Part shown: positions 2,795-64,000 of the stretch, piece after piece | How the letters are laid out: each line of letters opens with the position of its first letter | How positions within the stretch are numbered: the first letter of the stretch is position 1 | Source: Kudoa neothunni | Taxonomy: Eukaryota; Animalia; Cnidaria | Assembly (NCBI GenBank): GCA_964304625.1 | Contig: OZ199839.1 | Coordinates: forward strand, 9,531,979-9,595,978 | Length of the DNA: 64,000 nucleotides | Direction: 5' to 3' | The notes under the pieces: generated by a model | Seen by the model: only the letters and a program-made list of their open reading frames with translations | The model's database searches: none | What the model was told of the DNA's origin: nothing | Position numbers and translations under genes: made by a program

Positions 2795-4307
2795 ATGAAA
2801 ATTTCCTTACTAACCTTGATCTATATCACTTCAATCTGCATCCCTTATTGTTATCTCGAAGGTAATTCAACTTTATATACACTCATTCTTATTAATTATA
2901 GCGGATAAAAAATATGATTTTCACGCTAATAAAAACAAGAGAATTTACTTAAAATCATATCCTAAAAGATATTACGTCCACAAAGAAACAGCTACGTGCA
3001 AAGAGTTTGCGTACAAAGGAGCTGGCGGAACTAACTTCAATAATTTTGAGTCTCTAGAAGAATGCGAAAAAGAATGTAATCAGAACTTTATGATAGATCT
3101 TTAAACGGGTGATTTTAGTTGAGTTCGACTACGCGAGTCGAGTGGGCGTTTGCATAGCTGAAGGTATTCCTACCTCATCAAATCCTCTTCAAAGCAATGG
3201 TGATAACTCATTCAACGTTTGTAGTAAAAAAGTAGTTGAAAGATATTACTTCCAAAAAAACAGTGGTGCTAATCCTCCAGGTGAATGCAAAACGTATAAT
3301 TATAAGGGTTGTAACGAACCTAAGTACTCATTTCCGACTGAAAAAGCTTGCAAGGACATGTGCTTAAGTAAATTATTATTCATTTTTACAGTAATTGAAT
3401 TGGAAATAGCAAATGATGAAAATCACAAAATACCTAACAAAGTTGATTGCGCAGTGGGTGCAATTTTAACCTCAAATGCAGCAAGTGAAACAGAAATTAA
3501 GATTGTTCGTGACAGTGACAAATCCACATGTGTTCATGCCATCGTAAACAATAATGCACCGCGTGGTGTCTTCACTTCATTTACACAATGCCAAAAAGTA
3601 TGTCACGGTAATTACAAAAATAATCGGATAAGTCAAATAAGTTAAATTAGCTGAGGGCGAAATAACCAAAAGATGCGAGTCTGCTGCATACCAACCAACA
3701 AATGATGGACATATAACAACAAAATATTATTACAACTCTAAAAACAAAATGTGTATGCAAATGTTAGCTGTTGATGTCGAAGTAGACTCAACAAAAAATT
3801 ATTTTGATACAGCTGCAGAATGTATTAGTGCTTGTCCCGCTAGTACGCTTCTTTTATTATTTAAAATAATATAATTTTATGTTTAAAGTTAACGAAGATA
3901 AAACAGACGAGAAATTGCCTGATATTCCATCTGTCTGTAGCGAACCAAAAGAGCCTGGTAATGGAAACGAGGCAAGTACATTGCCAAGATGGTACTATGA
4001 TGAAAAAGAAAAAGTATGCAAACGATTTGCATATACTGGAATTGGTGGGAACGCGAACAACTTTGAAAATGAAGCTCTTTGCAATTACATTTGCATCGAA
4101 GGAATAAATGAAGTTCAATTACTTGAACCAACAACTACTCCAGAAACTACTACGACTACTACGCCTGCTACGGATGATTCAGGAGATTCCCAAACCCCTT
4201 CCGAATCTGGTCCAGAACCTGATCTAGAACCTACCTCAGGACCTAACGTAGAAGCTGAAGAAGAAGCTGAGCCAAAACCCTCTCATGTTAAAGAGGAGGG
4301 ATCATAA
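2795..4307 (+). CDS. Secreted five-Kunitz-domain protein, copy A (about 432 aa, 6 exons)
   Basis: Exons 2795-2861, 2902-3075, 3119-3367, 3410-3607, 3651-3842, 3889-4307 give 1299 nt in frame; all five GT-AG introns are phase 1 and 40-46 nt. Signal peptide MKISLLTLIYITSICIPYCYL. Kunitz motifs RWYYD..C..F.Y.G.GGNANNF....C...C. Acidic T/P/E-rich tail. Confidence 0.9.
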
Positions 4308-11899: not shown

Positions 11900-13343
11900 A
11901 TGAACATTTCCTTATTAGCTTTGATCTATATCGTTTCAAACTGCATTCCACTTTGTTTTCTTGCTGGTAATTCAACTTTATATACACGCATTCTTATTAT
12001 TTTTAGCAGAAACAAAATATGATTTTGAAGCTAATCAAAATCATAGAATTCGATTAAAATCCTATCCTAAAAGATATTACGTCCATAAAGAAACAGCTAC
12101 GTGCAAAGAGTTTGGGTACAGAGGAGCTGGCGGAACTAACTTCAATAATTTTGAGTCTCTCGAAGAATGCGAAAAAGAATGTAATCAGAACTTTATGATA
12201 GATCTTTAAACGGGTGATTCTAGTTGAATTTGATTATGCGAGTCGAGTAGGTGTTTGCACTCAGAGCACCACAACTGATGTTGATGAATCGAGCGATTTC
12301 AATGTTTGTAATAAAGAAAGAGTCACAAGATATTATTTTAAAAGACATGATGGTACCAATGCTGCGAGTTGCAAGACATATAGTTATAAGGGTTGTAACG
12401 AGCCTAAGTACTCATTTCCGAGTGATGCTGCTTGCAAGAACATGTGCTTGAGTATTTTATAATCAATTTTTACAATAATTTTAATTTAAAATAGCAAACC
12501 AAACTGGTCACGCAATACCCAACAAAGTTGATTGCGAAGTGGGAGCAATTTTAACAACAAATGTAGAAAATGAAACCGATATCAAGATTGTACGTGATAA
12601 TGAAAAATCCACCTGTGTTCATGCCATCGTAAATAAAAATGCACCGCGTGGTGTCTTTACTTCATTTACAGAGTGTCAGCAAAAATGTCATGGTATGTCA
12701 AAAAAATTAATTAAATAAGTTAAGTAGAATTAGCTGACGGCGAAATAACTAAAAGATGTGAGTCTGCTGCATACCAACCAACAAATGATGGACATATAAC
12801 AACAAAATATTATTACAACTCTAAAAACAAAATGTGTATGCAAATGTTAGCTGTTGATGTCGAAGTAGACTCAACAAAAAATTATTTTGATACAGCTGCA
12901 GAATGTATTAGTGCTTGTCCCGCTAGTATGTTTCTTTTATTATTTAAAATAATATAATTTTTTGTTTAAAGTTAACGAAAACAAATCAGAAGATAAATTG
13001 CCTGATATTCCATCTGTCTGTAGCGAACCAAAAGAGCCTGGTAATGGAAACGAGGCAAGCACGTTGCCAAAGTGGTACTATGATGAAAATGAAAAAAATA
13101 TGTAAACGATTTGCATATACTGGAATTGGTGGAAACGCAAACAACTTTGAAACTGAAGCTCTTTGCAATTACATTTGCATTGAAGGAATAAATGAAGTTC
13201 AATTACCTGAACCAACAACTACTCCAGAACCCACTACAGAAACTACTACTACTACTACTATTACGGATGACTCAGATGATTCCCTAACCCCCTCAGAACC
13301 TTCCGTAGAACTTGAAGAAGAATCTGAGTCCGGAACGCCGTGA
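11900..13343 (+). CDS. Secreted five-Kunitz-domain protein, copy B (one +1 indel in exon 6)
   Basis: Exons 11900-11966, 12007-12180, 12224-12451, 12495-12692, 12734-12925, 12972-13343, with the same intron positions and phases as copy A. An extra A in the A7 run at 13092-13098 shifts the frame within domain 5. Confidence 0.85.
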
Positions 13344-16986: not shown

Positions 16987-17924
16987 TCATTCTTGAGAAT
17001 CGTCCAGATTAGGCATCGTCCTAAAGAAACGTTGTCTGTATGTTCTAAGAATATTGATGCTGTTTATAATATCACCATGAGCACTAAATAATTTTAAAGG
17101 TTATTTGCGCGTAGGTAATAAATGTTTTAATTGGGAGAGAGTTACCGATGGTTTCCATCGGGAAGTTGTACAAATGTGCCTGCGCCATACCAACGTCTAT
17201 AGTAAGAGTGAATAGACAATACAAACACCAAATCCGATCATACGAAACCAACTCTTTAATACTGGAAACATCAACAATTCGATAATGAAGATGTTCGGAT
17301 ATTTTTGGCATGTGTCTATCGATAAATTTTTTGTCACAATGAATAGAAGACCCTGCAATAGGGCACACACCCTTCGGGGTGTATTTTTGAAGAAACTGTA
17401 AAACCAACTCTTCGGCTTCATCGAGAGATAATTCTGGATTGTTTGCATGCTTCCACAAGACCTGACTTGGTGTGTTGATCTGTGCACCATTCCCCCATAC
17501 CATTCAACACCTCATCCGGCCAATGAATCACATAAGTAGGAGCCTTATTATCAACAATCACATAATCAGATATAAGCAGCACAGTTGGAATAATCACCTC
17601 GGCAATTATTTTCAAATCGCCATCTGTTATTACAGTGGCAATCTCCAGAATCTTATCATTTTCAAAATCTAGGCCTGCACAAACAGATTAATCAAAAATG
17701 TTTATACAAACAAGTTCCAACAAATAACACACCTGTCATCTAAACCAACAACAACAATATTTATTAGATCCAACTCAATACAACAATACTTCCATGTCTA
17801 TCCATATCATATTCCTTGATCTGTCTTCACTCATTTTTTTCAAGAAATATAACTGATTGCGATACAGACGAGAGTAACTCCTTACAAAAAGGTGCACAAA
17901 TCCGACAAAGCGCATCGCACGCAT
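16987..17924 (-). CDS. REXO2: Oligoribonuclease (DEDDh 3'-5' exonuclease), 6 exons
   Basis: Exons 17924 (or 17834)-17790, 17739-17733, 17674-17598, 17543-17244, 17196-17146, 17083-16987. Motifs IWIDME-MTGLD, ILEIATVITDGDL, WCTDQHTKSGL, IHCDKKFI..HMP..HLHYRIVDVSSIKEL, NHRAHGDI. One +1 indel near 17432-17436. Confidence 0.9.
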
Positions 17925-25600: not shown

Positions 25601-27706
25601 TTAATCGACAGTTTCCATATCTTCATCTTCAAGGGCTTCAGCACCAGTAGCATTTTGACTTTGGGTGGTGTTATCATCCAATGTTTCAATTCCAAGACCC
25701 ATTTGGATCATCTTATTGAGACGAGCGGAAAGTTGGCTGGGATCGGGTATGACGAACCCAGAGCTCACCAATGAAACATCGAACAACAACTGGGTGACAT
25801 CCTTAGCAATTTTGTCGTTGGTATCGGCGGTGACACGAGCCAAAAGACTCTTAATGATGTTGTTGTCAGGGTTGATTTCCAAGTGTTTTTTGGCAGACAT
25901 GTAGCTCATAGTAGAGGAATCCTTGAGAGCTTGAGCACGCATGATTCTTTCCATATTAGCAGACCAACCATATTGGCCAGAAACCACACAACAAGGAGAA
26001 TCAACCATACGTTTGGACACTTTGACATCCTCGACGTTGGTTCCAAGAACCTCTTTCATGAATTTGCACAAAGGTTCAAAGGTTGTTTTCTTCTCTTCGA
26101 ATTGTTTTTTCTCTTCTTCGGTTTCGGGAAGTTCGAGACCATCCTTGGTGACTGAGACAAAGTTCTTTCCGTCGTATTCCTTCAACTGGGACATCATGTA
26201 TTCATCCATAGGCTCGTCCATGAAAATAACTTCACAGCCGGAGGCGACAACTCTCTCAACGAATGCACTCTTAGAAATTTGAGCGATGCTTTCACCAGCC
26301 ATGTAGTAGATATCTTTTTGGTTCTCCTTCATTCTGGAGACGTAATCTTTGAGGAAAATTTTTTCGCCACCAGTAGTAGTGCTGGTTTCGAACATAATTA
26401 GTTCAGCCAATCGAGCCTTGTTTTGGTGATCTTCGTGGATACCCAATTTGATATTTTTTCCAAATTGAGTGTAGAACACTTTGTAGTCTTCGGCGTTTTG
26501 TTTGATTTCCTCAAAGAGCTCAATGCACTTTTGGTGAGATTCTTTTTGATGATCTTGAGAATTTTGCTTTGTTGAAGAGTTTCACGTGAAATATTCAATG
26601 GTAGATCCTCAGAGTCGACAATACCACGGATGAATTTCAAGTAATCCGGCATCAAATCCATGCAGTTGTCCATAATGAACACACGTCTCACATACAGTTT
26701 CACTTGACTGACTGTCTTCTTGCTTTCAAACATGTCGAATGGGGCACGTCTGGGAACAAAGAGAATAGCTTTGAATTCGAGTTGACCTTCCACACTGAAA
26801 TGTTTCACAGCAAGTTGATCTTCCCAATCGTTGCTGATGCTTTTGTAGAATTCACTATACTCCTCTTTGGTGACATCGGAGGGAGCACGAGTCCAAATAG
26901 GCTTGACTTTGTTGACCTGCTCGATATCGATGTAATGTTCGGTGACAGTCTTCTTTTTCTTTTCCTCTTTGTTCCCTTCATCATCCTCTACCTCTTCGAC
27001 TTTTTGGTCTTCAGTGGCAGCGGTAGTTTCAGGCTCCTCTTCTTCAATCTCCTTTTCACGGGTCTTCTCACAATGAAGTCTAATGGGTAGTTGATGAATT
27101 GGGAGTACTTCTTGATAATGTCTTTCAAACGGTTGGCTTCCAAGTATTGAAGATCGTCCTCTTTCATGTGAAGAATAATCTTGGTTCCACGACCGAGAGG
27201 CTCAGAATGATCCGGAGCCACAGTGAAGGTACCAGATGCGGATGATACCCATCTGTATTGTTCATCATCATTGTGTTTGGACACAACCTCAACGGTGTCA
27301 GCGACGAGGAAGGACGAGTAGAAACCAACACCAAATTGACCAATCATAGCAATATCTGCTCCAGCTTGAAGAGCCTCAACAAAAGCCCTAGTTCCAGATT
27401 GAGCAATAGTACCCAAATTTTTGATAAGGTCAGCATTGGTCATACCGATACCGGTATCCAAAATGGTAAGAGTTTTGGCGTTTTTATCAGGAATGATATC
27501 AATGGTGAGGTCCTTCTTCTCGCCCAAAATGTCGTGATCAGTCATACTCAGCATACGAATCTTATCCAATGCATCTGAAGCATTGGAAATCAATTCACGG
27601 ATAACAACATCCTTATTGAGTAGAATGTGTTAACAATCAAACTCATAAGCTGAGCAATCTCAGCCTGAAAGTGATATGTGCTAGTATCAGCCGACTTAGT
27701 TGCCAT
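25601..27706 (-). CDS. HSP90: Cytosolic heat shock protein 90, intronless, with three single-base deletions in this sequence
   Basis: Start [30 protein letters not shown]. Signatures [79 protein letters not shown]. Ends METVD. Frame breaks at about 27616, 27085 and 26530. Confidence 0.95.
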
Positions 27707-31203: not shown

Positions 31204-32250
31204 CAGGGTATTTCAGAGTAAATTGGACATATTTCAGATTTAATCAAAAACGCGGTAGACATAATTTGAACTAAAACAGAAATACTGGTTATATGTATAC
31301 ACTCGAAATTAAGGAAAATAGCTAATATTGTTTTATTTATTTAATTCATCCATGGATTTAAGATATAATCAATCAAAACATCTCTACTTTGGGCTCTTGG
31401 GCGGTAACTTGAGACTTTTGCCTTTAATACAGAAAATATGTTCTCAATAGGATTAAGATGAAGAGAATACGACGGCAGATATAGGCATTCAATTGAGTTA
31501 GTACTCATCAGACTTTTTACCTGTTGTACATGATGGAACCTAACGTTATCCACGACAGGACAACTTAATAAGAGATTTTTTGTTCCAAAATCATTTCATT
31601 TGTTCGAGAAATTCAAGAATTTGGATCATATCAAATGGATCATCCAGAATTTTATGGCCAATTATTCCTTGAGTTAAAAAAATAACGCTTAACGATATAT
31701 TTCGTCCTTTAGAAGGACGTACCATGGCGATAGCGTCTTTGTCGGATTCCGAGTAACCATAATTATGCGATACGTGGAGATTGAATCCGCATTCGTCCAA
31801 AAAAAAACAACGATCTTTCTCCTCACGCCTATAATCTTGGAAGCATATTCTGCTACCGTTCTTTTGTGAGAATCCGTCAAAATAACAGAGACCTTTAGTT
31901 TAAGCCGTTTTCTCGTTAGTCCAGCAGATTTTATCAGTAGGCATACAGTTCCGTTGGATAGGTTCGATTCTTTCTTCTCGAGTAATTTTTTATGCCTACT
32001 TATGTTAGGCTGTTATCTCGGCCAATGATTTCTCTCACTTTGTTTTCGAGAATCGTGTTAATTTTCGGGTGACGTCTCTTTTTTTGTGCAAATGTATCGT
32101 AGCTGTTGGTTTTTGGGTTGGTCTCAATAAAAGGTTTTATTTAATGATATTTGGGACCTTCCCAAATCAGTAATTCCGGGTATTTTTTTGATGGACTCTT
32201 AATTTGATCATATAATATTTGATCAATCGCTTTTTAATTTTTTCTTTCAT
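31204..32250 (-). mobile_element. Tc1/IS630-type DD34E transposase pseudogene
   Basis: Motifs DECGFN, DNVRFH, YLPSYSLHLNPIENIFSVLK, with 34 residues between the second D and the E. TA-CAGGGTATTTCAG terminus at 31202-31216. Second TIR not found. Confidence 0.8.
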
Positions 32251-33592: not shown

Positions 33593-36500
33593 TTAGAAGC
33601 GAAAGAAATTATTCTTCATCTCTACATGAATTTGGTTAAAAATTTATAGAAACTAATTCAATGTTACTTGAAGATATTAATCAAGGCTTTTGACCTGAAT
33701 TGTCGTAGGGTTCTGATAGGAACACATCATCATTGTCACTATTGATAGAGTTGATAGGGCCGCCCAGCTTTAAATTTTGTTGACCGTCCAAAGTGACTCC
33801 CCCTACAGACTGGCTGTTTGTATTGATGAAAAGCGTGTCAATGTAACTGAGACAGTCTATCAGAAAATAAATCTTTAACCAATAGTTGACCTATGTGTTA
33901 ACCTAGTGAAAACGTCGATTGACATTGACTGTCTGTTTGTTGAGAAAAAGGAAATTCAACGTATCCAGGTTCGTTGGCTGATACACTACTTGCTAAATAT
34001 GATAAATGCATTACTTAATTGTTAGCGATTTTAAAACCCATCCGAATACCGGAACAATGTGACAAAAGTTGTTGATTGTTGTTTAAGATTGGTATCTGAT
34101 GTAGTGATTGAGGTTCTTCGATTGACGAGCTGAGCATCCCAGCGAAATTAGCAGTTGAAACCGACGACACTGTGGAGGGACAACCAGTTGGAACCATATG
34201 ATCACTTTGAATCACAGGGAAATTCTCATTTACTCTATTCGTCACATCAGAATTGCACTCAGTGTTGTTTTCGTATTCAGTGAAATGATTCACATCCGTT
34301 GAAATTGTGGCGAGTGTTTGAACTATAATTCACTGTCATCAACAACCGAAAAAATGAAATATAATAGAACCAATGTTAAAGATATTGGGGGAACTGCTGA
34401 CATTTTCTCTCCAAAGGGAATTTAGTTGAGTTTTATTTATGACCAACTCATTTATAATAGACGTCAGTTTACTCAAACAAGCTCCTAGTTGAATGCTTTC
34501 GTAAGGAATATTTTGAAGTTCGGAGTAGATTTGAGGGCTGCAATATGACTTCGATTTTGTTCGAAATTGGGTGTCAACAAAAGCGAACTTTAAATCACTT
34601 GTAATCACCAATGATTTTGTGGATTTGTCGCTAAAATATTCAAATTTTACAGTAGCTATCCGCCATTTATGTACAATTGCTTGTTCATAAAAAGCTGAAG
34701 TAAGCTTTTATCGATGAGTAGCTCATTGTTTGCACATAAATCTATCGGCATGTAACATATAGGACAAGAGAATGCTTCTTTTCCTTCACTCAACAGAAGC
34801 ATAGATAACATATCGAAACACTATCCATTCAATTTAGAATTAAGCGAAATACATAAACAATGTAATAATTCATGTTAAACTTACTTGCAAGTGGTTGCAG
34901 TTGACTCCTCGTGCAGGAATAGCTATTCGAGTGGCTCTTATAGGACAATACAATCCAACAAGCAGTGCTTCCACATGCATCTTTGATTTGGCCAAAGGGT
35001 TTATATAGGTGTCATATTTGTTTCTGATGCTTCTCAACAGAGCGAATGACTGTCTTACTGTGCAAATTAATAAATAATATTAGAGAGGAATTTTTGTTGA
35101 CAATCTACTTTGTGCCACGGTACTTTCTTCGGTACACATCAAGCGGGGTCCTATCTTTGCTAGCGCGGCGCCCCATGTGGTCACTTTTAGCTTTTCTACT
35201 TTTATGTGATAATCCTGTTTATCGTGTAAAAAATTATATTTAAACTGCAAAATTAGCGTTAATTATACCTCGCTCAATGATCCCACCTCAAAGGCGAAAA
35301 CCATTACATTTTCGCCGTTCAAGATAAAGGATTTCAGTGAAACTGGCAAATCACCATAGCCGTAATTGTGATAAACATTCAACAACTGACCATTTATCAT
35401 CATGCACACATTTTTTGGCCAGTTTAAATGATGGAATCCAATATTTTTCTTACAGCACGACATATTCAAATCGACTTCATTATTTTGCGTAATTTTTTCA
35501 AACATAGATTGTTCGATTTGGAACTTCTTCACAATAATCACTAGGTCCTTCAGATAAAAACTTTCTTCGTCATTCTCTGCACGAACTCTTATAATGAAAT
35601 CGATGATTACGCCCTCTTCAGAGCGCGCCAGCTTCATCACAGGATTTAGAATCTCAGCTGATTTTCGCATTACATATGCGACAACGTCCGCATTGGCTAA
35701 TCGAAAATAATTGTGAACATTAATTTTTTAATAAATAAGTGATGTGTATCAAAATCAAATATTTATTGATTACTACTTTTTTCGAGTTGAAGTTTAATTG
35801 GCTCAAGATTACGAACATAAGAACCTATCAAAAAGCTATCAAAACAAGGACCATGTGTTTCTTCTATTCCTTGGATCCCGGTCTGGTTGTAAGACTGACA
35901 CTCATAATTTGACGAATTGATATCCTGGCATTGTGCGCCATTGACAAAACCTTCCCTGTTGGTGACTTCAATTACAGGGGCAGTTTTATCGGTGTTATCA
36001 AAAATTGAACTAATCAAGCATTGATATTGTTCTGCCATACTGGTAAGTGCTGCAGCAAAATCTTCCTTCTTAATACCATCTGGAACTGTATTATTATTAA
36101 AATAACTATCTACGTGGCTATACGATTACATCGAGTAATAGTAGAAGCTATTTCAGCTGCGGAGTTCCATGCCGCTATATTCAAAGCATCGGTATTATTA
36201 TTTGTATTCGCGATGAAGTTATTATTATAATAATTAGGTTGATTTTCCACATTAAGTTGAATATTGTCTAACGAATTTCGCATGAGAGCGTTAATTTTAC
36301 ATATGTGATATACTGTTTTGGTTGTTTCCCCCCCATAAGCCCTTGGAACTGTTCTGCTGTGACTGTGGGTCTAGTCTCTTGTGCAATAAAGGATCCTGAA
36401 ACTGTTTAGGTGAAATATTATGACAAATGTTAAGAACCATTTAAGTAGTTTTGATTATATTGTTGAACAGGAAGAGAAATTTGGGGGTTAGGATGCATAA

Positions 36501-46694: not shown

Positions 46695-49600
46695 ATGGCA
46701 AAAGCTAAGGTATACGCCACTTCGTGGAATTATTTTTTGAATCGAATCTTCCAACTCTATATAATTAACGATTTTCTAATATCTAATCTATGTGATTGAG
46801 ATGATGAATTTAGTTGCCTGTGCTAAATGTATAAGATTAATTTTTTAGAATGTGAAACAAGCCCCCAAGGATATCAATGAGTTGAAAAAAGAATTGGATA
46901 CTGATGTTCATACAATAGAGTTGAATGAATTTTACAAACGTTACGAAACAGATCCAATAAAAGGTCTTAGTAGTGAGGAAGCTGAAAGAAGATTAGCTCG
47001 TGATGGTCCAAACCAGTTGACACCTCCAAAACAAACTCCACTTATTATTCGATATTTGAAATCATTTATCGATGGATTTTCATTGATGCTTTTAATTGGA
47101 GGAGTGTTGTGTTTGGTAGCATACGGAATAGATTATTCTGGAAATCCAGACACTCCAAAAGATTATGTCTATTTGGGAGTGGTGTTGATAAGTGTGGTGT
47201 TTATCACCGCCAATTTCACTTTTTATCAAAACAACAAAAGTTCCAAAATTATGGACAGTTTCAAAAAACTAATACCACAAGAAACAGTGGTGATACGCGA
47301 TGGACAAAAGCTGGCTGTGCCAGCTAGGAATATCGTGGTTGGTGATGTGGTTATACTGACGTTTGGTGATTTTATACCGGCAGATATTCGCGTGATCGAA
47401 TCGAAAGATTTCAAAGTGGATAACTCTTCGTTGACCGGTGAAAGTGAACCACAGAAACGTTTGAAAGATTGTACTCATGAGAATCTACTGGAAACAGCCA
47501 ACTGTGCTATTGCCTACACATACGCCGTTGAAGGTACCGCCACAGGCGTTGCGTTTGCTACCGGCGACAACACTATTATGGGCAGAATTGCATTCCTCAC
47601 TTCGTCTCTCTCTCAAACCATCACACCAATAGCTAGGGAGATCAGCAAATTTGTACATCTTATCACAGCGATTGCGATCTTTTTGGGAATATTGTTTTTC
47701 GGTCTTGGTATGGGTGTGTCAAAAATGAAATTTGTTAATGCCGTTGTCTTTTTGATTGGTATTATTGTGGCTAATGTGCCAGAAGGTTTGTTGGTCACAG
47801 TGACACTTTCGCTCACACTAACAGCTCAACGCATGGCCACCAAAGAATGTCTTGTAAAAAATTTGGAATCAGTCGAAACACTTGGTAGCACTGGAGTTAT
47901 CTGTTCGGACAAAACTGGCACACTTACCCAAAACAAAATGTTGGTCAATCATGTATGGTGTAACAAAGAGGAAATACTTGTACCCCAGAAAGAGGGTCAA
48001 AAACGTATTCAGTCCGGCTATAGAGATGATGTCCACAAAGCTATTTGTGTTTGTGCTGCTGTGTGTAATCGTGCTGAGTTTCGTGGAAACCAAGATCCCG
48101 AACTGCATGTCAATCACCTGTTGACCACTGGTGATGCTTCCGAATCTGCACTTGTCAAATACATTGAACAATTTGTGGAACCATTGACCGAATGTCGTGG
48201 TCGATACCCCAAATTATTCGAAATACCTTTCAACTCCACCAACAAATATCAAGTTTCCATTCATGAAGTTCCAAATGAAAGCAGATATTTATTGTTGATG
48301 AAAGGTGCCCCCGAACGTATTGTTGAACGTTGTTCCACTATGTTGGTGGATTCTGGTGAGGTTCCCAACGATGATGCCAATAAACAACTCATTTTCCAAG
48401 CCAACGAAAATCTTGCCAACAAAGGTGAACGTGTTCTGGGGTTCGCTCATTACTGGCTACCTGAAGACCAATTTCCTCGTGGCTGTGATTTTGTGGTTGA
48501 TGACATACCCAAATTCCCTCTCGAAGGCTTATGCTTTTTGGGTTTGATTGCTTTGATGGATCCTCCAAGAGATGCCGTTCCTGAGGCGGTTCATGAATGC
48601 AGAAGTGCCGGCATTCGTGTTGTTATGGTCACTGGAGACCACCCTCTTACTGCTAAAGCTATTGCAAGAACTGTGGGAATAATCGCGCCCGATTCAATCA
48701 CTGTGGATGAGGTGATGAAACGAGATAATCTCACATTCGATCAAGTAGACCCTTCGATGGCCAACGCAATAGTTGTCACTGGCTCACAACTCAAAGATAT
48801 GAATTCCGAACAGTTGGACAGTGTGATCACTATGTATCAAGATATTGTGTTCGCTAGAACCTCACCCCAACAGAAATTGCTCATTGTCGAAGGCTTCCAA
48901 CGACAAGGTTATGTGGTGGCTGTCACTGGTGACGGAGTGAACGATTCGCCAGCACTTCGAAAAGCTGATATTGGAGTTGCTATGGGAATTGCAGGATCCG
49001 ATGTGGCAAAACAAGCGGCCGATATGATCTTGCTGAACGATGATTTTGCCAATATAGTATTGGGAGTGGAAGAAGGTCGACTGATTTTCGACAACTTGAA
49101 AAAATCCATAGCCTACACACTCACCAGTAACATTCCTGAGATATTTCCGTTTCTCATCTATGTGTTGGCCGAAATACCACTACCTTTGGGAACTGTGACT
49201 ATTCTACTGATCGATTTGGGTACTGATATGCTTCCCGCTATTTCGCTTGCCTATGAAACCGCCGAGTCAGATATTATGCGCCGGAAACCTCGAAATCCAA
49301 AAAAAGATCGGCTTGTCAATGGACGTCTCATGGTATTCAGCTATGGCATGGTTGGTGTGTTGCAGGTGGCCAACGGAATGATCACCTACATATTGATAAT
49401 GATGTTCAATGGGTGGACTCTACCGCTACTGAGTGGAATCGCGAAAGATTGGGACAACCCCAAGGTGGCATATGTCACCGATTCCTACGGACAAGAGTGG
49501 TCTTACGCCGCCAGAAAAGATCTCGAATACACCTGCCACAGCGCCTACTTCTTCGCCACCGTTATCATCCAAATTGCCGATCTGCTCATCAGCAAAACCA

Positions 49601-49857
49601 GACTTCAAAGTATCTTCACTCAAGGAATTTTCAACAATCTTTTCATGTTGATTGCCATTCACTTTGAAGTGGCACTTGGAATATTTCTTATCTATTTCCC
49701 ACCTATCAATACCGGCTTGATGACTCGTCCCGTGCATCCCAGATACTTTTTGTTGGCTGTGATCAACTCGATCATTCTTTGGGGTCTCGACGAGTTGAGG
49801 CGTCTTTTCATGCGCCGCAATCCTGGAGGATTTATCGAGAGAGAAACCTATTACTGA
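46695..49857 (+). CDS. ATP1A: Na+/K+-transporting ATPase alpha subunit (P2C), about 1007 aa, 2 exons
   Basis: Exon 1 46695-46709 (MAKAK), a 139-nt intron, exon 2 46849-49857. Motifs TGES, PEGL, DKTGT, KGAPE, DPPR, TGDGVNDSPAL, YTLTSNIPE (Ser, i.e. Na/K rather than H/K type), DLGTD, C-terminal RETYY. Confidence 0.97.
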
Positions 49858-54673: not shown

Positions 54674-56662
54674 TATATTAATAATTGGTCACTACCAGCT
54701 TTATTAAAGGATACAATTTTTAAACTCAACGTTAGAACTAATATTTTTCTTGAGTAAGCAAAGGACCGTAAAATATTTGATGAAATTAGTTAATGAGTTT
54801 TTATATGAATTTAAATAGATTTTTATTCTTTGATTTATAAACATCCTAATATGATTAAGTATATTCAATTATAGATAAAATAAGAAAAATACGACTTTTT
54901 AGACAACGATTATTTGCGAAGTAATCACGACATTTACCGAACCATATTTTGAGGATTATATAATGAAATATTCAGAATTTATTTCAAAATTTGATGATCT
55001 AAAGCATAAAAATATATTTTTATTATTTTTAATAATTCTAAAAATAAGTTGGGTATAACTCTTATATTATTGACATACTTTACGTATTATTGTGTCTAAT
55101 TTACATCCCGGGGTTTTAAATTTTAATAAAATTTAAAAATCGTTAGTTAATGATTGTGGAATAAGAGTAGTAGTATTTTGCCCTTTTAAAATATTAATTG
55201 AATACTACGATCAGCTCAAGATTTAATATAATCTAATAACATTAAGGAATTATAGGATATAATTGAATGTAAAAATTAACTAAATATATGAATCGTAAGT
55301 TGTAATATTACTAGATTCGTTAATATTCTGTTTGGAAAAAGATGTAGAAACTGTTATAACTTGTTAAAGCTTAATTAAAAATCCTATTAACTGATAATCC
55401 CGTTATACTACCAAAAATTCAATTATTTCATCCCATTATCTTGTTAATTAATTAATTTTATTGTTTGAACCTTTATCTATTTATATATGATATTCTTATT
55501 AAAATTGGAAAAAACTATTGTTCAATTCTTGTTCATAAACATTTTTTACTTGCGCTAAATACATACTATAGTCTGATTTAATAAATGCGTAGTTAGAGGG
55601 GGCCAAAGGAAAATCACCCAATAGAAAGATACTACAAATTTCCTGGAAAAATATGGATATATTTTTTATTATTAAAATAATAATAAAAAAAGCTTTTCAA
55701 ATCAATGAGCTACATCTGAAATTTGAAATTATTATTACTTTACATCAAAGTTTTTAATAGACATCTCATAATTAAACTGAGATGATATGCTATATAACAG
55801 AGAGGCAATTAGGCTGATGTAAAACATCCGCATAGAATCTGTTAGGGTGCTATTATAATTTAATTCAAAAACAAATCTTTGCTTTAATTTTTTAAATGAA
55901 TAATGTTGAATTCTTCTATTAAATCTATAAATATCGTTTGTATTTATATTCCTTCGAATGTAAAAAATATTTCAATTAATAATTATAAATAAATATTTAC
56001 TTGATAACACCCAAAAACAATTAAAATATTATTTTTCGTTATTCATTATATAATATTAAATTTGTATTTGCTTTCATCATCGTCAAATATTAATTCGAAT
56101 TTTTTTTGGGAAAAGTTACATTAAGGTTGAGAAATTAATAAAAAATATCATTTTTCACATAGATATTTATATAAAATAAATGATTTTTCATCTATTGGAC
56201 AATTTTAGATAAGATATTATTTGCGCAGGAAGGATGGGAATAACTCTTTAGACAATTTTCTACCACCAAGTTTAAAATTAAAGAGTGATCAATGGGATAA
56301 AAACAAACTTATATAAATCAAATAAACGAAACAGCCAACATAAATTCTGCAGTTATACGGTGTATTGGGAGTATAATCATCTCAGTCCGAATAATACGCT
56401 TATTACCCTCTGAAACACCGTCAACTCTAAATAAACTACCTAACTGTTTCAGTGTTCAAATATCAAAGAATTGTTTTACCAAGAGTTCAAGTTAATCAGA
56501 CTTGATGTTAATTACGACATTATTGATTTTTTTTCTTGGGGAAATTTCCAGTAAATGTTTTTTATGTTACATAATGCCTGAATGGGTTTGGGAAACCCTT
56601 TCATTTCTCAAACTATCTACGATCATAAATTTTTATTGATTAAAAAACAAACCATTATTTAG

Positions 56663-59600
56663 ATACACCACGAAATAAGTGCAAAGTTAATTACGCCTAC
56701 AGATATGGTTCGGACATTCTTGACGTGTGGTTGGAAGCGGAAACTAGACTGTTGGAGATCTCATGGAAATTACAAGACAGTATTACCTATAAAACAGTAA
56801 AGGAATCAACTAGGAGTGTTGTGACATGCGATAATGAAAAAAAATGTTTAATTACTATTCATGAGATCAGTCGACTGGAAGGTTACTGGTTCTCTGGTAG
56901 AGTGGAACATTGTTCGCTCACCAATCCCATACCCATACATCAAAGTAACAATTATTTCTATTACGAAAAAATGTCACTTCATTGGAAGTTACATTAAAAT
57001 GATACTGTAATACATGGTCGGATAATTACTCATATTTTTCCATTAAATTTTAACAAATCTATTTATACTTATGTTTAAGGTGAAATTCGAAAATATATAT
57101 TTATTTGAACATATAATGTATATTTGTTACCTCTTTGTGGAATATAAAGAAAAATTAAAAGGCATTAAATATAATTATTTATTCTAGATTTAAGCAATTA
57201 ATCAAAAATAAAAATGATATTACAATATAATACTCATTTATTATATTACTTTCTAATAGAAGGCTTAAAAATTTAGATTCATCACTTTAAATTCAAATAA
57301 ACTATGAATATTATTTAATTATTACATTAGACAAGGAATGACATAATACATTCATCGCTTAAAAGCGTATAAATAATTACTATTGAACCTTATAATTGAT
57401 AAAAAATAGCATTTAACGTGAAAAGTTACAACAAACTAATTAAGTATATTTTTCGATATGAAATCACTGACTTAATTTAAAGAAAAATCTTTAATGTTTT
57501 GACTGTAAATGTTAAATTGACTTCGATAATAAATAATAAATATGCTCGACGAATAAACTTAAAATTAAATCTCTTGGGAAGTATGTTTGAAATAAATATA
57601 ATATAGGTCGATTAAATATCAAAGTGGAAACTCGTTTAAACTCCAGAAATAAAATAGTGTTATACAGCAAGATATTCTCTTATAAACGACAATTGTGCTC
57701 GATTGAAGTCATTTATAAACAACAGCAACAAAGATGCCAATCCAAGAATATGACCTCGAAGAAAATGTATTGTGATGAATTCAGTTTAACACCATCTACA
57801 ACCTGCACGCCCACTATAAAATTAGATATCGAAAATATCGCGAATTCGGTGATTGTGGAAAATAATGGTACGAAAATCTATTCCATTTAAATTTACTTTT
57901 TTTAGAATTTTTGGAAGCGTTACCTTCTAATACTGAAAGTGAAATAGGATTCGACATAGGTCCAATAAGGTCTATTAATGAAAATTGTCTCTACAGTCTG
58001 GTAGAAAGTAAATACTCTCAAAGAAACGAATTGCTTCTTTTGGAGCAACAACTACCATGCAACACACAAAATCCCGTTTACAAATACTCGTACTCTCCCG
58101 AATCGGTTTACATCTTCTATCACCAAAATGATCTGCCCCAATTTAATAACAAGGAATTTCGAATAATAAATCCATGTAGCTTATAAGTTGAAATCATCTC
58201 ATTTATCCATTTTAGACCGTAAAGATAACGATATCAAATTGAGGGAAGAACTGAGTTATGTAACTATTGAATTTGATAGCGAAATCAATCAGGAAGTTAT
58301 CTCATATAAATTCTACAAAATATACAATGGACAAACATTGAATATATTTGAATGTGATGGTTCCAATAAAAGTAACTGCGTTGGGATGATCAATGGAAAG
58401 CAGATAGTGTTTGAAAAGAAATGGTCGCTCGATTACAGCATTATTTTGTGGAAGGGTTCCGAGATTGTGCTAAAGAAAACTTTTTATTGGGGTTATTATC
58501 CGACAATAAATATTTTTCTAATCTTGAAATAGATTTGAATAAAATAAAATTTTATTTCCGAAAAATTAAAAACGAAAAATTAGAAATTTGGTCAAATATA
58601 CCAGAAAATAATAACTATATGTGCCAGTATTATCCTATACGAATAGATTCTTTTGAGTACGGTTTCGCCACTGCTGGTAGCTATAATTCTGTACTCGACC
58701 CCCAAAGCAACAGCACGTATCATTCATGTTCCAGATTTACTTTGGACATACGGGCTGACACTGTGAACACAGTTCACATATGGATACCTCAACTTGGTTT
58801 CACATACAAACTAACAAACAGTACTTTTCTAATTGATTAATTATTAAAATGCTCTTTGCTAGTTTATCAAGTGAATAATATAATTTTCAAGAGAATGGGA
58901 TCCAAATTAAATTTGGTATCAAAGGATGGTTTGTTAAAGGGTAAATATTGCGAAATAATTACAAAAGATGGTGACGTAGTGCAAGCACTTACAAAGTCTG
59001 GCACTTATAATGAATGCGAAAAAATTGACTTCACTAATTCTTACACGTTTGACGAAAAACATTTTATTAGAATACTGGGATATGACATGACTTTCGAGAC
59101 ACCTAATGTGATAGGTATTTGATGCACAAATTTAATAAATTGTGTTTTCTTATATTTTATGTATCTACATATAGAGGATCTACCTGATTCCATTCAATTT
59201 GAAGTTGTTGACGAAAGACTAAAATTAACAGTCTCAGAAAAAGTGTTAGCAGAGTTAGGATCAATATGGGTTTACTCATTACGTGATAATGTCCCTCGAC
59301 GAAAAAACATATGTTACGATATAGAAAACCCATGCCAGACTAGTATAGAGTTGAACCAACGAGAAAGAAGCTTTCACTTGCCTCATTTAATAGAAAAAAT
59401 TGTTTACGTTATGTTTATTCTAAAAAATGAGGACAAATTTTCAACAATTCAACATCTACGTATGTATATTTATTGAAATAATAATTTAATATTAGACAAA
59501 TCGATATTAATTTTATATTACAAAGATTAAAATTATACAATACCATATGCGGGTTTATTCAATTTAAATTTTTGTAGCCGAATTTAAGCCGGAATTTTTT

Positions 59601-62600
59601 TTCCTATTCAAAAAGTCTATGTTGGTTTTGAAACCAAAAAAACCAATTATTTCCGGGGAAGTGTGCCAATATTTTTTGTTCTCTTATGAGCTGGGTCCGA
59701 AAAAAGATTCAAGAGAACAAACGAAACTTGGTGATTGCTCTCAAAACCTTATTTTGCAAGATTTATTGACATTTAATGATCTCACGGTTTACCACAGGGG
59801 TAAAATAATTTACAGGGAGGCTATCACACTAGGTAGATTTATATCGATGTATTTGTTATTTGTAATAAGTCCCATATTTATATAAATAGGTTCCTCTCAT
59901 ATTCAAAGAGTTGACTTTTTAGAAAATAAATTCCATTTTCGAACCATGAATGATGCCGAAAATGCTTGCAAATATAAAGCGGCTCCATCATCTACCGGAA
60001 TTCGAAATCCATCACCAATCTTATGCCAAAATCAGCTACAAGAATGTGAAATTGATTGCAATAATCTCTTTGTTGCTTTGCCGTCAGCTCATCCCTATGA
60101 CATTGAAATTAGTAACTATTTCGGTACCAGTGTTATCCACATTCCAAAAAGTATCACTAAGCCCATTGAAGAATGAAATAATGTATTGTATTAGTTCCTA
60201 GGAAGATATTGTGGTCTCATCGCTGGAACAACGATGCAACATTACTTATCAAAAACAACCTAAAAGAGAATATTGATGGAATCTATAGTTTGCACGCAGT
60301 TGATGAAAATTCCAATCAGATACTGATAAAAGGTTGTCCAGACTTTAATAATTGCTCTCGAATCACTTCAATTGGAAATCAATTTGTCGTCTCATTTGAC
60401 CTCAACATGTTTTCATTGGATAAATACATAAAACTTATATATAGAATAAAACTTCATGACAACGGTGAAGAAAGTGAATATGTTATAGGTGGAGAATTGA
60501 TAATAATAAAATTATTTGTCTAATAAACGCAATATTATAGGCTTCAGTGAAAAAGATTTACATTTTGAGTATAGAGACGATGCTGAAGCTGAAGTAGGGA
60601 GCGAAATATGTGCTGGAATAGTTTTAGGGAAAAATACAAACAAAATAAAAAAATTGGAATTATACATCGTTGATATGATACAAAACCGAAATATTTTGGT
60701 GAAACAGAAAGAATATTGCTTTGATAGAGATGAATGTGCTTTCTGTTTCCATCATGATCCTCAGAAACATTACAGGTTGCTGGTGTCATTCAATCCAACG
60801 CTGATTTCACAAGCCTTAGATCAAAAAATTTTTGTAGATTACTACACAGAATCAAAAACTATGCAGGTATATTTATATTTTAAATTAACATAAAAGTTTC
60901 ATCGTAGGACGCGGCGGAGTCTGATTCCACATCGAACTCACTCCATGTGGAAATAACTATACGTCAGAAAGTGTTTGATACCTATCCGATAACTCCAACG
61001 CTTTATATTTATTATAACAAAAATTTCCACCAAAAAAAAGCTCCAATTGAGCCATTTAAGTGTGAAACAGATCAATGTAATATTGGGGATTTTCACAACT
61101 TTCAGTTCGCTCTGAAACCCAATGAAGTTATTCGAATATGCTTTCCTTCGGAGATAGGGTCGATGAATTGCAGAAATTTTGAGTCAAGTATATAATTTTC
61201 ACATTTATTACGGGAAAATTGCTATAGAATATCACAATAATTAATATCTAAAATAAAAAGTATCAATAAATAATGATGATTAATAATTAGTGAAACTGAG
61301 CTTATTGGCAGAGGTTTTTAAACTTTTTTATCTCGTTTCCCAATTTATTGGATGGGAAATCTGGATCCCCGTCTTATTTACACGTAGATATTGGCTAGAA
61401 TTACGAAGAGTTAAAAATCAAATCTTATACACTGTAATATTAAAAATACCTAATTTTATTGATATAAATATTTTTAAAAACAATTTACTATGTAATAATA
61501 ACTAGCGCAAACTTATCACCTTCAAGCGAAGAAAACATTCTGTGATAAACGATCATTAAAGCCACAGAAATATTACACGAATTCTTTCAATTAACCCTTC
61601 CGTTTCAAGATAAAAATCTTCTGCGTATGTTCGTATGTCTCACGGTATCTGAGAGACTCAATGAATAGTCAGCACAAAATATTTTTGTACTCTAATAAAT
61701 AATTTAAACCACTTTTAAAAATATCTTTAAGATATTTTAATTCGTCGAGAAATAATGTAGCAGCTTTGATAACTGACCGTTAAACCTGATTAATTTATTG
61801 ATAAATTATAATTTAAATATTAAATCAAACTACAAGAAACCTCTGGTATAAATTTATTCCATTATTGTATATTTAAGTTCGAATAAAACTTATAAATTCA
61901 CAGAGGTAACTTCTCTTAACCAATCTCCATTACATTCCGTAATATCGTAATGTTCAAGTAATAGCTCGACCGGTTCTGTAGAAGGATGTAACATATTGAA
62001 TCATTACTCTTTGACCATGATTAATTTTCTGTGTTCCATTTATTTTTCAAACATTAGGCTGAATATTCAGCATATGGGGGATTACAGAATCAGCAGCAGT
62101 CCACAATTTTATCTTGTAACGACTAGGTTTGCTTTTCATGTGTACTCGAAGAGGGTATCTATCTTAAAGCGAACAAGACGGTTTTTAAGTAATATTATTA
62201 CCCGAGAATAATATTATATGTACTCTCAGTTAAAAATATAAAAAATTTAGTGACATGACAAAAATTTTAATTTTGTCTTTCCAAAACGTCAAAACCTCAT
62301 GAATTTATTATCAAAATGAATTTTTGTACATATAGAACGGAATCTATTTCAATTTTATGTGGAGGGAAGAAGCGTTATTTAAAAAGTGAATTTGTATCCT
62401 ATAAACGTCTGAGAGACAATATCCGACCATTATGTTAAATATTGTAATATTTATTGTTTATATACTATATAGTTTTGAATTCTTTGTTTAATTATATAAA
62501 TTATTGATAAATAATTAATACTGGTTAGATAGATATAATTATAGTTTAAATAAAAGTCTATTTTTACGTCAATATGTCTTAAAGGTATTTTGATGAATCA

Positions 62601-64000
62601 TTATTTGGAGACTAAAATATTATACATTTATAACTTATAAAAGTATTATATTGGATTTTTTCAGGTAAAAAAGAAAAATAAAAATGAAATTAGTTTAAAT
62701 TAATTTAAAAAAAATATATAAAAATTGTAATCTGTTATTAGAAAAAGTTAGAAAATTTATCCACGGAAAGAAGACCGTAGGAAATACAGCTATTGAACCA
62801 CGAAAAAATGAGAATAAAATTATTCAGATTATATTTCAATGAATAATAAATAAAGCGAACGGGATAAATAATCGAGAAAAAAATGAGTTAATTTTCTCAA
62901 GATCGTGCTAAATCGTTACTTATGTCCCACCAGTATTATTTATTTTATTATCAGAAATATAAAATATAAAGTAGCGCTGGCAGTTGAATATTAATAATTT
63001 TTCTGTTCTCAATTATTAGAAAAGATGTTTTAAAAATCGCGAGGTTAAAATCACCTGATGCTCCTTTAAATCTTAAGATTTTATCTAGCTTTTAAATATA
63101 TGCGATATATTAAATTTACATTTTATAGAGTATCAACTGAGAGAGTTCAAAGTCGTATCAATTATCGGTAATGAGATTTTATTCGAGGTTGGTTTCAACA
63201 CACCAAAACTCCAAAATTATTGTCGTTACCGTTATAAGCTTCCCTCACCAAGTAACATTAAAAACTTTAATCTAATGGAGTGCACGTGTGCTGAAGATAT
63301 CCCTGAAATTGTTATCAACTGTTATGGGGATGATCTCAAGGTGTATGATGATGGGGACGAGTTTTACTACTACGTTGAGTATGAAAGCAAGTATTGTATT
63401 GATTGTATCAGTAGGGTTGCTATCCCTAAAATGTCACGTATATTAACAAATTCGAATTTTCAACTATCGATTCAAATATAAATAAACTTTTATAGGCATA
63501 ACATCAAACGTTCCGTCCAAATATTTGTTACTGAATCATACCACCCAACACACATTATACGAATATGACACCATCTACAGAGTGTACAATTTTCAAAATC
63601 TTTTTACGAAGGAAAAAATAATAGATACCGTTGCAATAAGTGAGATTAGCATTGATGGTGATGGAAATGTTCTCTTAGCCACTCCAACAAGACGAATTAT
63701 CCAGTTGAGATCATCCTACGACTCATCATTGAGCATAACCCATGACCACACGGCTGTTTCACCTCATCTATATATATTAAGTATTCGAAAACACTTAATA
63801 TATAAAAAATTCAATGTGTTTTAGGGAATCATAAATTGAGGATTATTAGTTATCGAGCAAACTTGGTTGGAAAAGAAATATTATTTGAAGCTTTATTGAA
63901 TATGAAAATTGGAGGTAGATTTGATGAAATGTTTCCACTTGTGACCAAATGCGATACTGTGGAATCGCAAGTAAACCCAAACCAATCAGAATATAAAATA
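56663..64000 (+). CDS. Large orphan modular protein (>1300 aa, at least 15 exons), both ends incomplete
   Basis: Exons 56663-56944, 57607-57867, 57906-58175, 58216-58491, 58533-58820, 58863-59114, 59175-59459, 59578-59832, 59890-60150, 60195-60488, 60541-60866, 60908-61187, 63129-63437, 63496-63780, 63825-end join in one reading frame through GT-AG introns. Confidence 0.75.

Follow-up and report, generated by a model that had tools for sequence, protein, structure and literature searches.

What is encoded by the long chain of domain-sized exons that begins at position 56663 of a 64-kb window of the Kudoa neothunni genome and is cut off by the window end? The window (i.e., the whole 64-kb stretch of DNA that was analyzed) lies on contig 2 (G000:C2:9531979-9595978) of the assembly used here (40.26 Mb; 4 contigs); the genome has been described as 40.2 Mb in size, with an N50 of 12.0 Mb and a G+C content of 30.4% (PMC12239612). 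Positions are given in window numbering, which is carried on past the window end for numbers above 64000; for the downstream segment (L006), window numbering equals the L006 position plus 63021. An earlier note on this DNA had regarded the chain as a giant orphan gene. This part of its reading did not hold, as the chain very probably continues beyond the window end and leads to the GAIN/GPS and 7TM parts of an adhesion GPCR with about 14 paralogues. The exon chain is most likely the extracellular arm of a large adhesion-type GPCR.

Within the window, the chain consists of 14 complete module exons on the + strand (56663 to 63780; 252 to 326 nt each; AG/GT ends throughout) and part of a 15th (63825 to 64118, i.e., L006:1097), in which the window ends at 64000. 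When rebuilt from the sequence, the model exactly matched the 14 exons of 252 to 326 nt described earlier, of which 12 are multiples of three (exceptions, 60541 to 60866 [326 nt] and 60908 to 61187 [280 nt]). The recomputed phases also agreed: 13 of the 14 introns were in phase 1, including that at 61188 to 63128 (1,941 nt), two parts of which correspond to dispersed repeats found at other genomic sites. The sole phase-0 intron joins exons 11 and 12 (60541 to 61187), so these are symmetric only as a pair. All of the other complete exons were in phase 1/1, namely, exon 1 (56663 to 56944; 282 nt), exons 2 to 10 (57607 to 60488; 252 to 294 nt; intervening introns, 38 to 118 nt), exon 13 (63129 to 63437), and exon 14 (63496 to 63780), the last of which lacks cysteine. 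The coding length inside the window was 4,100 nt (approximately 1,367 codons), in line with the claim of a single frame of >1,300 aa across the 1.94-kb intron, as read from the DNA alone. The reads of runs X3 and X4 extended over introns and contained no splice junctions, so these runs behaved as DNA. Furthermore, exon 1 resembles module exon 19 (E value, 2e-4), which ties together both sides of this intron. From 56663 to the last module exon, 22 open frames of at least 80 codons were found on the + strand and 2 on the - strand; the same threshold gave a mean of 0.87 and a maximum of 3 in shuffled sequence (300 shuffles).

Several candidates for a first exon with an ATG and a hydrophobic stretch lie upstream of exon 1. 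One among them (56505 to 56550, +; 15 codons with a hydrophobic core) ends at a phase-1 GTAAAT donor (56551), 112 nt ahead of module exon 1, and may encode a signal peptide. The broken segment noticed earlier near 56345 was also present (56210 to 56500, +). It contains stops and frame changes, scored weakly against module profile A6 (E value, 0.016), and is probably a decayed module exon; with the first exon at 56505 taken as the start, it falls upstream of the gene.

Past exon 15, six more module exons extend to 66059, and all of their ends are in phase 1. Exon 16 (L006:1144-1412, i.e., 64165 to 64433; 269 nt) contains a frame change near 64290 to 64300, beside a short run of A. Exons 17 to 21 end at L006:3038 (i.e., 66059) and are followed by a gap of 1,218 nt (L006:3039-4256). 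Within it lies a dispersed repeat that occurs at least 39 more times in the genome. After the gap, eight exons with compatible phases lead to a stop codon at 69266. They comprise the GAIN/GPS/TM1 exons (L006:4257-5322, +), the first of which starts with a phase-1 acceptor, and the exons for TM2 to TM7 and the tail (L006:5376-6245, +). Phase compatibility was unbroken from exon 1 to the stop codon apart from inside exon 16. Together with the candidate signal exon, the whole model has 7,586 coding nt (approximately 2,530 codons). An open frame at L006:3109-3340, the end of which is hydrophobic, was considered as a membrane anchor after exon 21 and rejected because it overlaps this high-copy repeat.

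The identification as an adhesion GPCR draws on several matches, with the exons searched individually. Directly ahead of TM1, a GPS motif was detected (PF01825; E value, 2.3e-4; 22.1 bits, just under the curated cutoff of 22.5), and the 7TM part matched 7tm_2 (E value, 1.7e-3, just under the curated cutoff). The structures matched by a profile built from ten copies of the last 7TM exon were all adhesion GPCRs (best E value, 7.6e-7), and a match to ADGRD1 (E value, 0.0045) also supported the GPS. A hydrophobicity scan gave seven peaks in the 7TM part and no membrane-like stretch in any module. The GPS motif (CxCxH-x-T) is invariant in 11 copies and retains the consensus His and Thr (PMC13197933). 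It reads H-T-T in the present receptor, with T-S-Y as the agonist core, whereas the consensus sequences are H-L-T and T-x-F (PMC13197933). The large GAIN exon had no Pfam match and showed approximately 30% identity among paralogues. Word searches of protein databases with the last 7TM exon and the module alignment yielded no match, with only proteins of similar length visible.

The modules themselves are highly diverged, with 9 to 26% identity to exon 19 and a central cysteine or cysteine pair. A Pfam scan of the module exons, including FN3 (PF00041), gave no significant match for any exon scanned. Structures were modeled for 2 of the 21 modules (exons 8 and 21). The exon 21 model has eight strands (pLDDT, 80), and its best structural match was an FN3 domain of the LIF receptor (Z score, 7.3; root mean square deviation [RMSD], 2.7; 86 residues aligned); further FN3 domains and Ig-like domains scored equally. 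The model of exon 8 (59578 to 59832) has seven strands (pLDDT, 67) and best matched a cytokine-receptor chain (Z score, 6.7; RMSD, 2.5; 72 residues aligned); Z scores below 8 indicate a common fold only. A Foldseek search with the exon 21 model found nothing at an E value of 0.001, and searches of the ESM Atlas gave no match by features and generic Ig-like/FN3 domains by shape. In both models, the domain borders coincided with the exon borders, as the earlier note had anticipated, and each of these two exons is predicted to form one seven- to eight-strand beta-sandwich that fits FN3 or other Ig-like folds. These models are consistent with the extracellular beta-sandwich array, with one domain per phase-1 exon, that had been proposed. 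Modules 8 and 21 share their fold with the FN3 domains of cytokine receptors, tenascin, and CD45, but sequence identity to these is mostly <15%, and Ig-like bacterial domains score equally well.

A genome search for paralogues, which the earlier note had suggested, returned 14 further 7TM loci and 31 module look-alikes. The former were found with the last 7TM exon (36 to 44% identity; one with stops), and the genome thus appears to hold about 15 such adhesion GPCR genes, including the present one. The queries that recovered the look-alikes were exons 19 and 21 and a profile built from seven modules. Thirty of the 31 located outside the gene lie on the same strand as, and no more than 40 kb upstream of, a paralogous 7TM region, although such upstream zones make up <0.8% of the genome; given that the paralogues are clustered, these 30 are not independent. 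Five look-alikes are positioned 1.66 to 1.69 kb before the last 7TM exon. Because the GAIN exons fill about 1.5 kb, an exon-21-like module abuts the GAIN exons in these five paralogues. The same distance is 2.76 kb in the present gene because its gap contains the dispersed repeat. A search with an N-terminal module-type profile found the present gene alone, so the support from paralogues is strongest for the C-terminal modules; a search with exon 13 gave two weak matches (E values, 0.06 to 0.1).

Two further observations concern these families. The paralogous GAIN regions of L012, L014, L023, and L025, and also those of L016 and L017, have almost the same DNA sequence, even in their introns, which suggests that they were duplicated or converted recently. 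A second array, likewise made up of exon-sized modules, lies some 22 kb beyond the window end (L008:3181-9508, +); in it, some modules have a clearer FN3 signature (PF00041; E value, 0.044) and one matches the module profile of the present gene (E value, 5e-4).

Taken together, the exons very probably belong to one gene of approximately 12.8 kb with 30 exons, predicted to encode an adhesion GPCR of approximately 2,530 residues. The protein would begin with a short signal peptide and an arm of 21 FN3/Ig-like modules, each encoded by its own exon and most containing one or two pairs of cysteines, followed by a GPS-bearing GAIN domain, seven helices, and a tail. All exons are presumably spliced into a single transcript. 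The module array probably grew as phase-1 exons were duplicated and then diverged fast. It is improbable that the locus instead contains a pair of genes, one for a module array that stops at exon 21 and is secreted or anchored and a neighboring one for a short adhesion GPCR. Unspliced read-through after exon 21 does meet a stop within a few codons, the gaps of 1.2 and 1.9 kb are long against the typical K. neothunni intron of 49 nt (PMC12239612), and the genome has other module arrays not tied to a 7TM region (L008). However, the phase-1 donor and acceptor agree across the 1.2-kb gap, the length of which is accounted for by the repeat; the module array on its own would have no membrane anchor; and the arrangement in the five paralogues, in which an exon-21-like module adjoins the GAIN exons, argues for a continuous gene.

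A different question is whether this copy of the receptor gene is intact. The break in exon 16 reflects either an assembly error, a skippable dead exon, or early pseudogenization. If the break is real and inactivating, the copy would be a young pseudogene, which is compatible with the adhesion GPCR architecture; we consider this unlikely, although the chance is appreciable. Besides the break, the decayed segment near 56345, the absence of cysteine from exon 14, and the dispersed repeats inside the two long introns favor this explanation, whereas 20 of the 21 module exons and every GAIN/7TM exon are open with intact splice sites. Moreover, the break lies beside the short A run in an assembly built from about 7-fold long-read coverage (PMC12239612), and skipping exon 16 would keep the frame.

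The latter property extends to most of the array: of the 20 intact module exons, 18 have phase 1 at both ends and can be skipped with the frame preserved. This raises the idea of a Dscam-like or antigenically variable receptor with module exons skipped or chosen combinatorially, in keeping with the high divergence of the modules and with the alternative splicing described for adhesion GPCRs (PMC13197933). We regard this as very improbable. The modules do not form a set of near-identical alternatives for a single position, all of them can be joined in series, mostly across ordinary introns of 38 to 60 nt, and the two long introns are without notable repeat pairing. The array shares domain-sized symmetric exons with the Dscam exon cassettes but, at the DNA level, shows no sign of the mutually exclusive exons of Dscam. 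Symmetric phase-1 exons are also the normal outcome of exon duplication in such arrays. Exon duplication is thus the best explanation of the phase-1 symmetry, which permits skipping without demonstrating it.

The genes surrounding the array have features of their own. An intronless gene at 46852 to 49857 (+) encodes a 1,001-aa P-type cation ATPase, which we take to be Na/K-like; the lack of introns is unusual where short introns abound. A nearly intronless HSP90 gene (25601 to 27630, -) changes frame near 26500 and 27100, and its product ends in ETVD rather than EEVD. Kunitz/BPTI domain exons with Thr/Glu-rich linkers are present at 3097 to 4304 and 12948 to 13340 (+), the latter being a partial duplicate of the former. 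Smaller features on the - strand are an oligoribonuclease-like exon (RNase_T; 17087 to 17503), a DDE_3 transposase fragment (31594 to 31899), and a ZMIZ-like exon (35266 to 35727). Downstream of the window, two RSK/S6K-like kinase genes lie in tandem and contain many short introns (L006:8890-10000, L007:700-1650, and L007:9540-L008:2240). The only small subunit rRNA match found (L009; G000:C2:5424779-5428248) corresponds to a partial 18S gene (3' third), interrupted by AT-rich sequence, with ITS1 and 5.8S; the 18S fragment appears Kudoa-like.

Giant adhesion GPCRs are exemplified by ADGRV1/VLGR1 and CELSR, which share with the predicted Kudoa receptor a very long repeated beta-sandwich arm on a GAIN-7TM unit and differ from it in domain type (Calx-beta and cadherin, respectively). 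Sponge adhesion GPCRs with fn3 and Ig domains (PMC4302439) likewise carry a beta-sandwich arm on this unit. More generally, the Kudoa receptor has in common with the adhesion GPCRs (class B2) a GPS before TM1, seven helices, and, very probably, a long modular extracellular arm, and its best PDB matches were ADGRF1, ADGRE5, ADGRL2/3, and ADGRD1; the arm is distinguished by its modules, about 21 in number, which are FN3/Ig-like but strongly diverged and have no Pfam match. Both the receptor class and its design of one domain per exon are already well established, as are long repeated arms on adhesion GPCRs, so the present copy adds a member rather than a mechanism.

By analogy with other adhesion GPCRs (PMC13197933), the receptor would be secreted and then self-cleaved at the GPS. 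Its long arm may attach to the surface or matrix of either host or parasite, and mechanical pull or ligand binding would free the tethered agonist, leading to signaling through a G protein. In a word search, GPCRs were not mentioned in the genome paper on Sphaerospora molnari or in that on Myxobolus honghuensis, and our literature search found no description of these receptors. That the giant receptors form an expanded Kudoa family whose fast-diverging FN3-like arms are varied by skipping, as a repertoire for host recognition or immune evasion, is a speculative and rather improbable extension of these results. Myxozoans have lost most ancestral genes. Despite this loss, about 15 adhesion GPCR genes, many with long module arrays, appear to have been retained in a parasite genome of only 40 Mb and about 5,300 predicted proteins, which makes the Kudoa adhesion GPCRs natural candidates for sensing or attaching to fish or worm tissue.
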